A stretch of 64,000 nt of DNA from Laetmonice hystrix (Eukaryota). Position numbers and translations under genes: made by a program. Shown one piece after another: positions 20,896 to 26,800 of the stretch (the first letter of the stretch is position 1; each line of letters starts with the position of its first letter). The stretch covers positions 744,001-808,000 of the forward strand of contig OZ249445.1 of NCBI GenBank assembly GCA_965235115.1, given 5' to 3'. Below the pieces are notes generated by a model. The model did no database searches. It was not told where the DNA came from and worked only from the letters and a program-made list of their open reading frames with translations.

Positions 20896-23800
20896 TTACT
20901 GTTGTTTACAATCGGCCGGTTTTTGCTGACCCGTCTGAAACAGTAATAAAAACATACGGTTACATTCAGGTCACAACGTCCCATATTTTGTTCTTGGCAA
21001 TTTGTAAAAAACATGGCAGACTGATAAAAGGTGTGCACATGCAGGCAAATGCTGATCTGCCAACTAGAGTAGTATTTTTAAGTAATATATTATTCCACAT
21101 TCCTGCTGCATACAAGAAACTACAAGAACAATCGACTACTTTGATGCATCAGTTTTCGTTTTCGGCAAGTTATGACATTCTAGTCTGGCTCCTTTTCCTA
21201 TTATCAATCGGGGTTTTGTTTGAGAAGAGAAGTAATAGAACTGCAATATTTACAGTGGTACTCATAAAAAATGGAGAAATAAACATTTAATAAATCCAAA
21301 GTGAAAACCTCAATAACCTGGAACAACTAATACATGATAGCTCTGGTAGCAGCAAAATATTCATAACTCATCAATAACAGAGCAAGTAGTCAACACAAGG
21401 TTTGAAGTCCCTTTACCCCGAGTTGATACAGATGTATTGTGGTGGCCAAGTTCAATCAATTCTAGATGCGGATTACCCTAAACATACAGTCCTAAACACA
21501 GAAACCTCAGTGAAAAATTGTGCTCGCGTTACATCACCTCATGCAATTTCCTTTTACCATCAGTCCACACCAGGCTCCTAAAAATATTTAAATTTCTAAG
21601 GTCACCCAGAAAAATACTGCAAAAAGCTTCTCACAGAGCACCAAATTCTTTCATGTAACTGAACTGAACTAAGGGTGTACCATTCCAATCTAAGTACTAC
21701 CCTACATCATTAACCAAACCAAAGAGGTGGTGTATTACAAAGATTCCACACAGGTGGCAGTAATTCATACCGCGGGCACGAAGTCTGCGTCGTTATCCTC
21801 ATCATAATCTCCCTCGTCATCGTCTCCCTGCAACCATCAATCTCACGTCAGTCTCACATCAAACATTGAAAATTATTAGGGCAAAGTAATCACATCAATT
21901 CAGGTATAATACATCAATAAATTACTGCTTGAAAAATCAAATACGGAACTAATACTGCATGTACCATACTCTACTCTATGTGTACTGTATGTGCACTGTA
22001 ATACTGGATGTACTGTACGTGTACTGTACTCTATGTGTATTGTATGTGTACTGTACTCTATGTGTACTGTAATACTGGATGTACTGTACGTGTACTGTAC
22101 TCTATGTGTATTGTATGTGTACTGTACTCTATGTGTACTGTATTACTGGATGTACTGTACGTGTACTGTACTCTATATGTGTACTGTATCTGTACTGTAC
22201 TGTATGTGTACTGTAATACTGGATGTACTGTACGTGTACTGTACTCTATATGTGTACTGTATCTGTACTGTAATACTGGATGTACTGTACTCTATGTGTA
22301 CTGTATTACTGGATGTACTGTACGTGTACTGTACTCTATATGTGTACTGTACTGTATACCCTACTTACCTCCTCTTCTCCTTCTTCATCATACTGAAACC
22401 CAGAACAGAATAACCTATTTAACACTGAGCAGATGACAAAACCTCAATCTTTGCATCAAAATTTTAGCCCTGACTGGGAAGAGTTGCATCACTCTATGTA
22501 AATTCATCCCCATACAAAAATCCAGTAGTATTCAAGTGTATAAAGAATGTTCTTACATCATCATCTTCCAATGCCTCGCCAGTGAAGTAGAGTACTGCCC
22601 GCGGGACAATGCGCTCACGGATAAAGTGACCAATTTCAAAGTCAGCAGCAAGCAGTGCCTCCGTATCCTCGTCTGGTTCCTCACCTTCAGGCACTTCAAT
22701 AAAACACGGGTCAACATATCAATACCAGCAACACAACCAGCAACTTATATCAATATCATTACATCGTTACAATTCAACTTTCTGTTTTGTGATGAGTGAT
22801 TTAATGATGGGTTTATACATTTTGTACATGTACACAACTTCTAAACTGTTAAATAGCACCCTCCTTACGACCTGGGCAAAGTCGGCCCGCAAACCTACCT
22901 TCTGGCGGGGAGAAAAAGTTGAAGAAGGAGTCATTTTGAACAGTTTTGGTGACCGTACGCTTTGTCCCACTTCCCTTGTGTTTCTGAACCTTTTTTATCA
23001 CCTTCACAGTCACGTTCTTTCCCTTCTTCCAATCAATAGCACATCTACAATTAACAAATCACAAATTTAGGACAAAGATGAACATTTCAACACATCATTC
23101 CAACTGTAATACGACGATCAATTCAGGTTGACGCGAGACTTTCTGACACACGTATAGAGTGCAGTTGACAGAGCTCAGTCAAGGCATAATAAAGATGATT
23201 TCATTCCCTCTCTCGGTCAAAGGTGTCCTAAGATTTGCATCACTGCTCGTCACTGCACTTGAAACATCTTACATGGTTGTTCTATTTCATTTACTGAACA
23301 AGTCGATGCGTAAACCATGTGTATTTGATTAAAAAAACAAAATTCAATTCTTTAACCGTTAATTTGTTCAATCTTATCATACAATCTGACGCCTTTAAAA
23401 CATCCTTGACAGTGCTGCTAAGATAAATTATATATTCTTTATTTGTTTTAAACGCTAAAGGGAAGGTGACGAGAGAAGACATAGCTCAGTAAACATCAAT
23501 TTCACACCCTCTATGGGTCAATGGTGTCCTAAGTGTTCATCATTGCTTCTCGTTCTCGTAAAGTAAAGCCAGCAGCAAAATTTACTTGAGATATGGAAAA
23601 ATATTTATAATGACTTATCTTATCAGTATCGGGCCTGATGGCAATTAAGCCCCCCCCCACACACACACACACCAACCATCCCTATCGGGTGGAGGTGACC
23701 CAGACATCATCAGTAACAAAAATGAAATCCACCATACATTACAAAGAGGCAGGTAATATGGCTCAGTCAAGGCGAAATGTAGATTTCATTCCTTCAATAT

Positions 23801-26800
23801 TAGGTCAAAGGTGTCCTAAGATTCTCATCACAGCCCAATACTGCCTTCATCACTTACTTCCTGTTTGTATCATAATAAATATTAACATCCAGCCCACCAT
23901 TAGGAAAACAACCAAAAAAACAAAGATTTTGTGAATCTTACTTTTAGCTTTGCCTTCACGTTTCTGCCAGAATTTTTTCTCGGTGGAAGGAGTGGAGTAG
24001 ATATTATAAAGTTCTGTATAGATGAATAGACATACTTTGGACTCTCCTACTTAATCCCAGGTATCTAAGCAAGACGACACGAGAGAAAAGTGCAGTTGAC
24101 CTAGCTCAGTAAAGGTTAATGTGTATTTCACACCCACTCTGGGTCAAAGGTGTCCTAAGATTTTCATCATAGCTCGTCACTGCCTTGAAAACCCCTCCAA
24201 ATCCCTAAACTTTTGGCATAGCGGGCCCCTGTATTTTAGGCTGCTACACCGTCTCTTGAACAACGTAGTAGTAAAAACAGAACCCAAATGAAACCTTTCT
24301 CATCTGGCTATCTAGACTGCAAGATAAGGCTCTAAAATAGCCTAAATTACCAGCTTTGGGGGGGGGGGGGGGGGGGGCTCGGCTCTCCTGTGACCCTAAC
24401 CAGAGCTCTGCCCTTGGTATGAACACTCTGCTGCCGAGACTTCTGGCGGGAACCCTGCCTAAGTCATATACGTGTACCTAAAAAGATGGGCATACCATCT
24501 GTTGGGGTTTTTTCTTGAATGACGAACTGAATCCTTTTTCCAAAGGTTCTTCTGATAATATACAAAATAACAAAATTAATAAGTCAGGGATTAGGAAATG
24601 TACTCACCCTTTACACTTGATAATTTCTGGTCCCTCAAATCCAAATGGATCGGCAGTATCTGGTTCTGACCTCATTACGTATTCCTTTGTTAATACAGTG
24701 TTGGTGAAGTAGTCGTTGCTATCAAAGTGGAAGTCTAAAGTAAAGCCCTGCAATGAAGTACAACAGTGCACTATGTGACCTCTCACTCGCCATGACAGTA
24801 ACCATGGCTAAAGTTGGTTCCAGAACTTGTACCCATATGTCTGGTGCAAAGATCTATATTTAAACCAAAGAAAAATCATGCTGGTTATGATGCTGCAACT
24901 AGTTAACGTTATTTCCAATGTTTTCCAGACATTGAATCTTAAATATTTCATACGGGTCAACTCTTGGGGCTATGGCAAAATACTTTTTCTTGATACATTA
25001 AAATATGACTTACCATTGGATCTGCTTGTGAGAATTTAACTTTGATATCCTTTAAGTGTTTAAGAACTGGCTCATCGTGATCCTGCAAGAAAAGAATATA
25101 AATACTTGAAACTTTGATGCAAACAGTTACATAAGACAATTTGTATTCATGGCCCCATTCTTAGACAATTTGGGGGTGTAGAAATGTAGCAGATCTTACC
25201 TGAACCATCTCCGACAGCATGTCCACATTCTTGAAGACTGTCAGCCAGAACTGTGGAATTCCTGATGGGTTTTCTGAGGATTAAAACAAAAAGTTTCATG
25301 TAGCACTGAACTCCCTGATTTAGGATTGCCACTTCAACGATACATATATTTAGCACAGTATATACTGGTCCATGATTCACACCGACACTGTATTTAAAAC
25401 TAGCTTGAATAATTCATTCATATTTAGAACTCACGCTCTGCAGCATCCTCCTTCTCCTTCTCTTTTTCCTTCTCCTTTTCTGGTTCCTCCTTCTCAGCCT
25501 CGGGTTTCTCAGCCTCCTCCAACTTGGCCTTCTTGGCCAGGTCCACCTGTCATGAGAACAGAGGTTTGTAAACACCCCGTTCACTCACCCTACATACTGT
25601 CCACTTCATACCATAGCCTCACCAATACACAGCCATCACACTAGCCCAAACTAAGTGAAATTGTCATTTTTTGAGAATTTCAACATGTCCTAGAAAAAGA
25701 ATTACCAGCTGTGTCAGTTTTCATTTTGGCAAAAGAAGTAGAACCTTCCACAAGTCGTAGGTATTCCCGCGAGGATCAAACATCAGTTTAGTGTCTCACT
25801 GCCTCCCTACATGGTTCCCAGCTTTCCAAAATTCAAGGACTTTTACCAGATCATTATTTTTTCAAGGACCATGTTCAGGCCTCCTTTCAGTTTTTCTTTT
25901 CATGGGATAGTGGTGATAATAAAAAGAAGGACACCCTGACTTTAAATCAGACACCTAGAATTTTAGTCTGTTCATCAAATTCCCGGACCTTTGCAGGACT
26001 TGAGCACATATTTATAAATTCCCAGAGGTTTCCTGTCCAGGAAGTCCCAATATATAATTTCCAGACTTTTCCCAGTTTCCTGGACCCACGACCCATGTTC
26101 CCTAGTGTAAACATCTTGATTCTGTCAATGATAAGCAGCTTCACTTACACAGAACTTTATATTAGCACTACATATTTTGATCTTCGTACAATTAAGTTTA
26201 TCTGTGTCATAGTGAATTATCCAATAAAAATTAAACCCAAACTGGAATTTTCTATGGGACGATAAATAACATAAGTTTGGCAATCAGTTTGTGTAACAGA
26301 ATCTTGGACTATCACGCCTCTGTGTCAAAGGTCAACTACAAGCTGGGGCTTGGCTCCTTCTGCTAGCTTTCTGACCATGTGGCCCTCTCATATCAAACAA
26401 GGTATATTCCATATCCTCCAGTGTTGTGCAACCTTTGCTTTACATAAAAATAACTTTACTTCTTTCATATGAAAACAATAGGAGCATGATAAATAGCTGA
26501 AGTTCTTGTGCTACCTCCAAGACGCCAAGGATGGACAAAGGACACTGTGAACATGTCACAATTATGAAGAACAATCAATCATTCCCTCTGAGGTCTTGTG
26601 TTGTTCATGCTACATCGTGATGTTTGGAGAATTTGGCATGTTTCAGTTTTACTGTAGAAAAAGTAAGAAACCAAAGCAATACGGCACTTAAGCCCCCCCC
26701 CCCTCAAAATTAAGTATAAGCAAAATTCTTCATGCATAAACTGTCCGAACTAAACATGAATATGGAACACATAACTGAAACCCCACCAGTTGCAGTAAAG

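Follow-up and report, generated by a model that had tools for sequence, protein, structure and literature searches.

The 64-kb stretch of Laetmonice hystrix DNA analysed here (contig OZ249445.1, positions 744,001 to 808,000; hereafter the window, which contains no N) carries on its minus strand a NAP1-like (NAP1L) gene, one intron of which holds four short units with the anatomy of box C/D small nucleolar RNA (snoRNA) genes. The boxes, the guide motif, the matches to the Rfam SNORD58 family and the NAP exons recognised by Pfam bear out the original prediction, made from the sequence alone, that four sense-strand C/D units share a single NAP1L intron. The explanation that we favour, and consider probable, is that the units form one sense-oriented set of four paralogous SNORD58-type genes, probably all functional, which descend from old local duplications and whose processing would be assisted by stems formed by their flanks.

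Four SNORD58-type units between two contiguous exons

The host intron (23045-24607, minus strand; 1,563 nt, GTGAGT...TTGTAG) was delimited from the sequence and from the contiguity of its flanking exons in the NAP profile. The upstream exon (24608-24747, minus strand) ends in ...GPEIIKCK followed by the GG of a split glycine codon, and matches positions 127-172 of Pfam NAP (PF00956; E = 5.9e-16) as well as the homologues P0010 and P0270 in tblastn. The downstream exon (22899-23044, minus strand) starts with A+TGT GCT ATT GAT TGG, encodes CAIDWKKGKN...FFSPPE and matches positions 174-221 of the same profile (E = 8.9e-19, matched over 23043-22899). The gap left in the profile between the two exons is a single position, the split glycine codon. 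P0270, the closest homologue, is continuous over the junction (IIKCKG/CTIDWKKGKN), as are the full-length homologues, and the intron thus contains no coding exon. The direct joining of the two exons, proposed earlier, agrees with these alignments, and coding continuity, which excludes a coding exon between the units, supports a single intron; a non-coding internal exon is presumably absent as well. With four units between profile-contiguous exons, the locus is an intronic cluster in the usual sense of at least two sense snoRNA genes in one host intron.

The motif CTTAGGACACCWTTGA occurs four times, always on the minus strand (gene sense) and inside the intron, within 23217-24159; shuffled sequences gave an expectation of 0.12, and 0 of 100 shuffles reached four. 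All four units have the box layout of SNORD58, with a C box near the 5′ end, a D box near the 3′ end and a short terminal stem, the C box of unit 4 reading GUGAUGC. The internal order is likewise the same in each: the guide is followed by the D′ box (UUGA), a small D′-C′ hairpin and a degenerate C′ box ((G/A)UGAAAU), which a spacer varying between 9 and 19 nt separates from the D box (CUGA). From the D-box end of one unit to the C box of the next there are 219-274 nt.

Unit 1 (24103-24175, minus strand) has the C box AUGAUGA at 24170-24164, the guide AAAUCUUAGGACACCU, D′ at 24147-24144, the C′ box GUGAAAU at 24131-24125 and D at 24109-24106; its C-to-D span is 65 nt, its D box ends 1,061 nt from the 3′ splice site, and the arms of its external stem reach to about 24186 and 24092. 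Unit 2 (23760-23836, minus strand) combines the C box GUGAUGA (23831-23825) with D′ at 23808-23805, the C′ box AUGAAAU (23789-23783) and D at 23766-23763; its C-to-D span is 69 nt, a distance of 718 nt separates its D-box end from the 3′ splice site, and its external stem has a sequence of its own, GGCAGUAU.../...AUAUUACCUGCC. Unit 3 (23483-23548, minus strand) is the most compact, with 58 nt from the C box AUGAUGA (23543-23537) to D (23489-23486), D′ at 23521-23518 and the C′ box GUGAAAU at 23505-23499; its guide, ACACUUAGGACACCA, is 1 nt shorter and has an A beside D′, its stem is of the GAGAAG/CUUCUC type, and its D box ends 441 nt from the 3′ splice site. Closest to that site, at 130 nt, is unit 4 (23172-23248, minus strand), in which the last base of the C box GUGAUGC (23243-23237) is deviant; D′ lies at 23220-23217, the C′ box AUGAAAU at 23204-23198 and D at 23178-23175. 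Its C-to-D span is 69 nt, and it has the longest external stem, GUGCAGUGAC/GUCAACUGCAC.

Two pyrimidine-rich tracts ending in AG (UCUCUCGU...UUAG) were noted at 24064-24090 and 23452-23478 (minus strand), 41 nt past the D box of unit 1 and 31 nt past that of unit 3, respectively, and a GUAUGU stands about 30 nt past the first tract. The two tracts have sequence in common and may represent either duplicated flank or cryptic acceptors.

The guide, CUUAGGACACC(U/A) followed by UUGA, is linked to the D′ box and complementary to AGGUGUCCUAAG of the large-subunit (LSU) ribosomal RNA (rRNA), and the Rfam SNORD58 consensus has the same guide (UCUUAGGACACCUUUG) and the same order of boxes. Under the fifth-nucleotide rule, as read from the sequence, the C five nucleotides upstream of D′ would pair with the G of AGGU[G]UCC, a position that the literature assigns to SNORD58A-C (human 28S Gm4198 in the old numbering, Gm4228 in the new). 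Consensus identity, pairing rule and literature thus agree with the earlier assignment of both the guide and its target.

All four units match the Rfam SNORD58 model (RF00151) over its full length, with 34.4, 38.9, 27.7 and 34.7 bits for units 1 to 4; the E-values of 2.6e-6 to 3.4e-3 were computed on a 2-kb region, and an E-value threshold was used. The Rfam match that the original prediction had named as a check is therefore present in all four copies, but below the SNORD58 gathering score of 42 bits, so a default scan is blank: the whole window scanned at gathering thresholds gave an empty result. The low scores are explained by insertions between D′ and D, which make the units longer (58-69 nt from C to D box), and in unit 2 the Rfam alignment ends short of the true D box. 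SNORD58-type units fetched from environmental sequences for comparison reach 32-42 bits, which makes the scores of the four units ordinary for non-vertebrate members of the family.

Conservation, origin of the copies and external stems

Aligned with one another, the four copies are invariant in the C box core, the 11-nt guide core, the D′ box plus CC, the C′ box and ACUGAGC. Identity between copies over core and stem averages 72%, against 57% in shuffled sequences, whereas the outer flanks (100-120 nt on each side) are unalignable, with 54-55% identity against 58-59% in shuffles, the random level. This pattern confirms the earlier observation of conserved boxes and guide beside diverged spacers. 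The spacers are fully randomised, which marks the copies as old, and they are too diverged for a tandem array to be called, Tandem Repeats Finder having detected none. Direct-repeat families end about 20 nt outside the units. Homology reaches past the predicted mature ends into the flanks that form the external stems, but no further, which argues that the copies would have arisen by old local duplications of DNA and not by retroposition of a mature snoRNA.

Three runs of one sample provide DNA contigs, which confirm the arrangement piecewise and contain about 32 allelic single-nucleotide polymorphisms (SNPs) in the covered intron. Three of these fall within units (23191, 24122 and 24137), all in loop or spacer and none in a box or guide, a placement that gives weak support in the same direction as selection. 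R1, a covariance model derived from the four units, detected neither additional nor decayed copies in the 64-kb window, and a flank-duplex C/D scan of the whole gene recovered only the same four. A strict terminal-stem C/D scan of the gene returned nothing, missing the four known units too, and was discarded as too strict. The repeat finder indicated a possible fifth copy at 23978-23993, which was rejected for want of R1 support.

In the minimum free energy folds, all four units are closed by a long stem formed by sequence beyond the C and D boxes. The alignment-based external stem measures about 15 bp and, together with three pairs of the D′-C′ hairpin, gives 18 pairs, over which 87.5% of cells are paired, compared with 33-41% after the 3′ partner has been shifted by 1-3 columns. 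Changes on both sides of a pair between paralogues are found in 8 of the 18 pairs, and 0 of 500 shuffles reach the observed values. The stem sequences of units 2 and 3 differ from those of units 1 and 4, as expected if pairing is kept and not sequence. The flank duplex energies of units 1 to 4 are -15.7, -14.9, -12.5 and -23.4 kcal/mol.

Human C/D snoRNAs are reviewed as lying preferentially some 50 nt upstream of the branch point, while splicing-independent assembly is described as possible via long external stems. None of the four units is at the preferred position, canonically about 80 nt from the 3′ splice site. A different arrangement is seen in L010, an invertebrate-like metagenome contig (560-930, minus strand of the locus), where two SNORD58-type units occupy consecutive introns of 182 and 202 nt in a CIZ1-like C2H2 zinc-finger gene whose spliced frame is open. 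There, exactly 81 nt separate the end of each D box from the 3′ splice site of its intron, and the flank duplexes are weaker (-9.8 and -1.4 kcal/mol). From the contrast between long stems off position and weaker stems at 81 nt, we infer that the clustered units rely on their external stems for position-independent assembly of small nucleolar ribonucleoproteins (snoRNPs). The contrast also agrees with findings in mammals, where assembly becomes position-independent through external stems.

In the proposed mechanism, each unit would be expressed with its host and assemble with the C/D core proteins, and its D′ guide would pair with the LSU rRNA target, leading to 2′-O-methylation of the G that corresponds to the human SNORD58 site. 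Owing to the external stems, folding and assembly of the snoRNPs may depend neither on position nor on splicing. Exonucleases would then trim the intron, either after splicing and debranching or after endonucleolytic cleavage of the pre-mRNA, to leave four RNAs of 66-77 nt.

Alternative explanations

It is conceivable, although unlikely, that the units are separated by non-coding or alternative (poison) exons, which would give each snoRNA an intron of its own in some transcripts, as in non-coding snoRNA hosts. The pyrimidine-AG tracts behind the D boxes of units 1 and 3 would suit such exons, but they stand too near the external stems for a normal branch site and resemble the flank homology common to these two units. 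Productive mRNA must join both NAP1L exons directly, and long stems on all four units would be needless if each lay at the optimal distance from its own 3′ splice site. We give a rather low probability to the idea that only one or two copies are functional and the rest are decaying duplicates that still look intact. The C box of unit 4 (GUGAUGC) could be read in this way, as could unit 3, which combines the lowest Rfam score with a shortened guide and an A beside D′. Against decay, all boxes, the 11-nt guide core and the stem pairing are kept in all four copies despite fully randomised spacers, boxes and guides are free of polymorphism, and the deviations in units 3 and 4 are at positions that we take to be tolerated in known snoRNAs.

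The presence of a high-copy interspersed repeat in the same intron invites the further suggestion that the units are themselves a snoRNA-derived mobile or retroposed repeat without guide function; this, or a chance resemblance, is very improbable. The repeat (24224-24415, no strand assigned), identified from contig k-mer depth and loose contig ends, lies 5′ of unit 1 on the gene strand and outside the units, over which contig depth is single-copy. R1 matches only the four units in 64 kb, there are no poly-A tails, homology runs past the mature ends into paired flanks, and all four copies are sense-oriented in one intron. Chance is excluded by four occurrences of the guide motif against the 0.12 expected.

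Several points nevertheless weigh against the explanation by four functional, stem-assisted SNORD58-type genes. All four units are under the Rfam gathering threshold, and the terminal C of the unit 4 C box and the short guide with an A beside D′ in unit 3 could mean that one or two copies are weakened. The covariation comes from four paralogues, which are related sequences, and the contrast with L010 from a single locus. The target predicted for this animal is drawn from the literature and from guide identity, with the 28S rRNA of other species as reference, and the small RNAs and the splice junction of the locus are predicted from DNA.

Host gene, other genomes and known systems

Pfam NAP matches five exon pieces of the host gene. 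Its protein, for which a 48-aa exon served as the query in the representative-protein search before full-length relatives were used, is 85% identical to the transcript-derived P0270 over 299 assembled residues and about 70% identical to the annelid NAP1L1 of Owenia and Ridgeia (tblastn). A maximum-likelihood tree of NAP1L places it inside a clade of annelids with a nemertean and a brachiopod, sister to molluscs (support 99/94), which makes the organism a lophotrochozoan other than a mollusc. On these comparisons the host is classified as a NAP1L1/4-type gene, orthologous to those of other Metazoa. At positions 23005 and 23020, inside the exon 23044-22899, the window differs from the contigs of all three DNA runs (fixed differences). 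In the 24224-24415 repeat of the host intron, the summed contig k-mer depth rises to about 20,000, against about 55 in the flanking single-copy bins, and many contigs break, their loose ends carrying G-run/C-run palindromes; a G/C homopolymer of 20 nt lies at 24358-24377. Directly downstream of the NAP1L acidic-tail exon, at 22061-22364, a degenerate short-period repeat reads as YSTHRVQYTY-like units in all three minus-strand frames; it is probably an intronic minisatellite.

The host intron has a counterpart at the same position in the NAP1L genes, or fragments of them, of seven other lophotrochozoans: three metagenome-derived relatives (L001-L003), the annelids Ridgeia, Capitella and Paralvinella, and the oyster Magallana. 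In L001-L003 the orthologous introns measure about 105, 280 and 1,000 nt. The original prediction had pointed to the orthologous intron of relatives as a place to look, but none of the seven NAP1L loci contains the guide motif, an Rfam SNORD58 match or an R1 match, while R1, as a positive control, detects genuine SNORD58-type units in the metagenome contigs L007-L010. The seven loci without the cluster indicate that it is specific to the lineage of this organism. The pattern used on the metagenome collection demanded a UUGA D′ box, where the Rfam SNORD58 consensus has UUGG. Three very AT-rich contigs (GC 0.20-0.27) each hold one compact SNORD58-type snoRNA of about 55-60 nt with an identical guide (L007:322-382, L008:1113-1171 and L009:4958-5018), and they show that the guide is widespread beyond the RPL17 context of animals. 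To our knowledge, the 28S target stretch is universally conserved, which is consistent with the same guide in these protist-like contigs and in the invertebrate-like L010.

NAP1L genes are broadly expressed. In the 'constrained drift' model, the association of a snoRNA with its host is unstable over long timescales and the main requirement on the host is broad expression, which NAP1L thus satisfies. The locus is a lineage-specific case of such drift, the family residing in RPL17 in amniotes, in NAP1L here and, as a third host, in the CIZ1-like zinc-finger gene of L010. The host switch proposed earlier holds in so far as the host differs from that of vertebrates, and a third host is known from L010; drift between hosts is the documented norm over long timescales. 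Both the layout and the change of host are of kinds already known, and no major concept is changed. The most useful point is the contrast between units at 81 nt with weaker stems and clustered units at 130-1,061 nt with long, compensated stems, a mildly interesting mechanistic lead which suggests that introns able to carry arrays might be predicted from their sequence by a simple rule. A more far-reaching proposal, which we hold only tentatively and would not call likely, is that long covarying external stems free C/D snoRNAs from the rule of one per intron at about 80 nt, and that this lineage has shifted genome-wide to multi-copy intronic arrays; the NAP1L intron might then also be the only source of the SNORD58 guide in this genome. 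If true, the lineage would be a natural system for position-independent snoRNP assembly in animals.

Among known systems, the four units most resemble vertebrate SNORD58/U58 (RF00151; SNORD58A-C(D)), with which they share the box order, the D′ guide, the predicted target G, a single conserved guide, the degenerate C′ box (UGAAAU) and several copies in one host. Amniotes have four cis-duplicates in different introns of RPL17, one per intron, conserved from birds to mammals, in agreement with what had been stated for vertebrates at the outset. As multiple copies in one host are thus already found in amniotes, the organisation differs here only in the host and in the packing into a single intron. 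At the level of the units, the D′ box reads UUGA where the Rfam consensus has UUGG, the C-to-D span is longer, external stems are long, and the distance to the 3′ splice site ranges from 130 to 1,061 nt.

Rice and Drosophila melanogaster also have snoRNA genes clustered within introns (Liang et al. 2002; Huang et al. 2005, as cited in PMC2780460), so that describing the present architecture as atypical for an animal was an overstatement. As far as they are described in the citing article, those clusters likewise place several snoRNA genes of the same orientation in a single intron of a protein-coding host; here the organism is a lophotrochozoan, the host and the snoRNA family are others, and all members are four paralogues of one family. 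The locus extends this layout beyond flies and plants.

A further parallel is found in mammalian intronic C/D snoRNAs with external stems, where flanking complementarity also closes the C/D core of units at a non-optimal distance from the branch point; in mammals this behaviour is established in cells, whereas for the present units it is predicted from sequence. Yeast snR38, which had been named as the equivalent of the four units through Gm2815, is not their counterpart. It corresponds to human snR38A/SNORD1, and although both are box C/D guides for a G in domain V of the LSU rRNA, as the four units are predicted to be, their target is yeast Gm2812/2815, that is, human Gm4362, and they form a separate Rfam family, RF00213.

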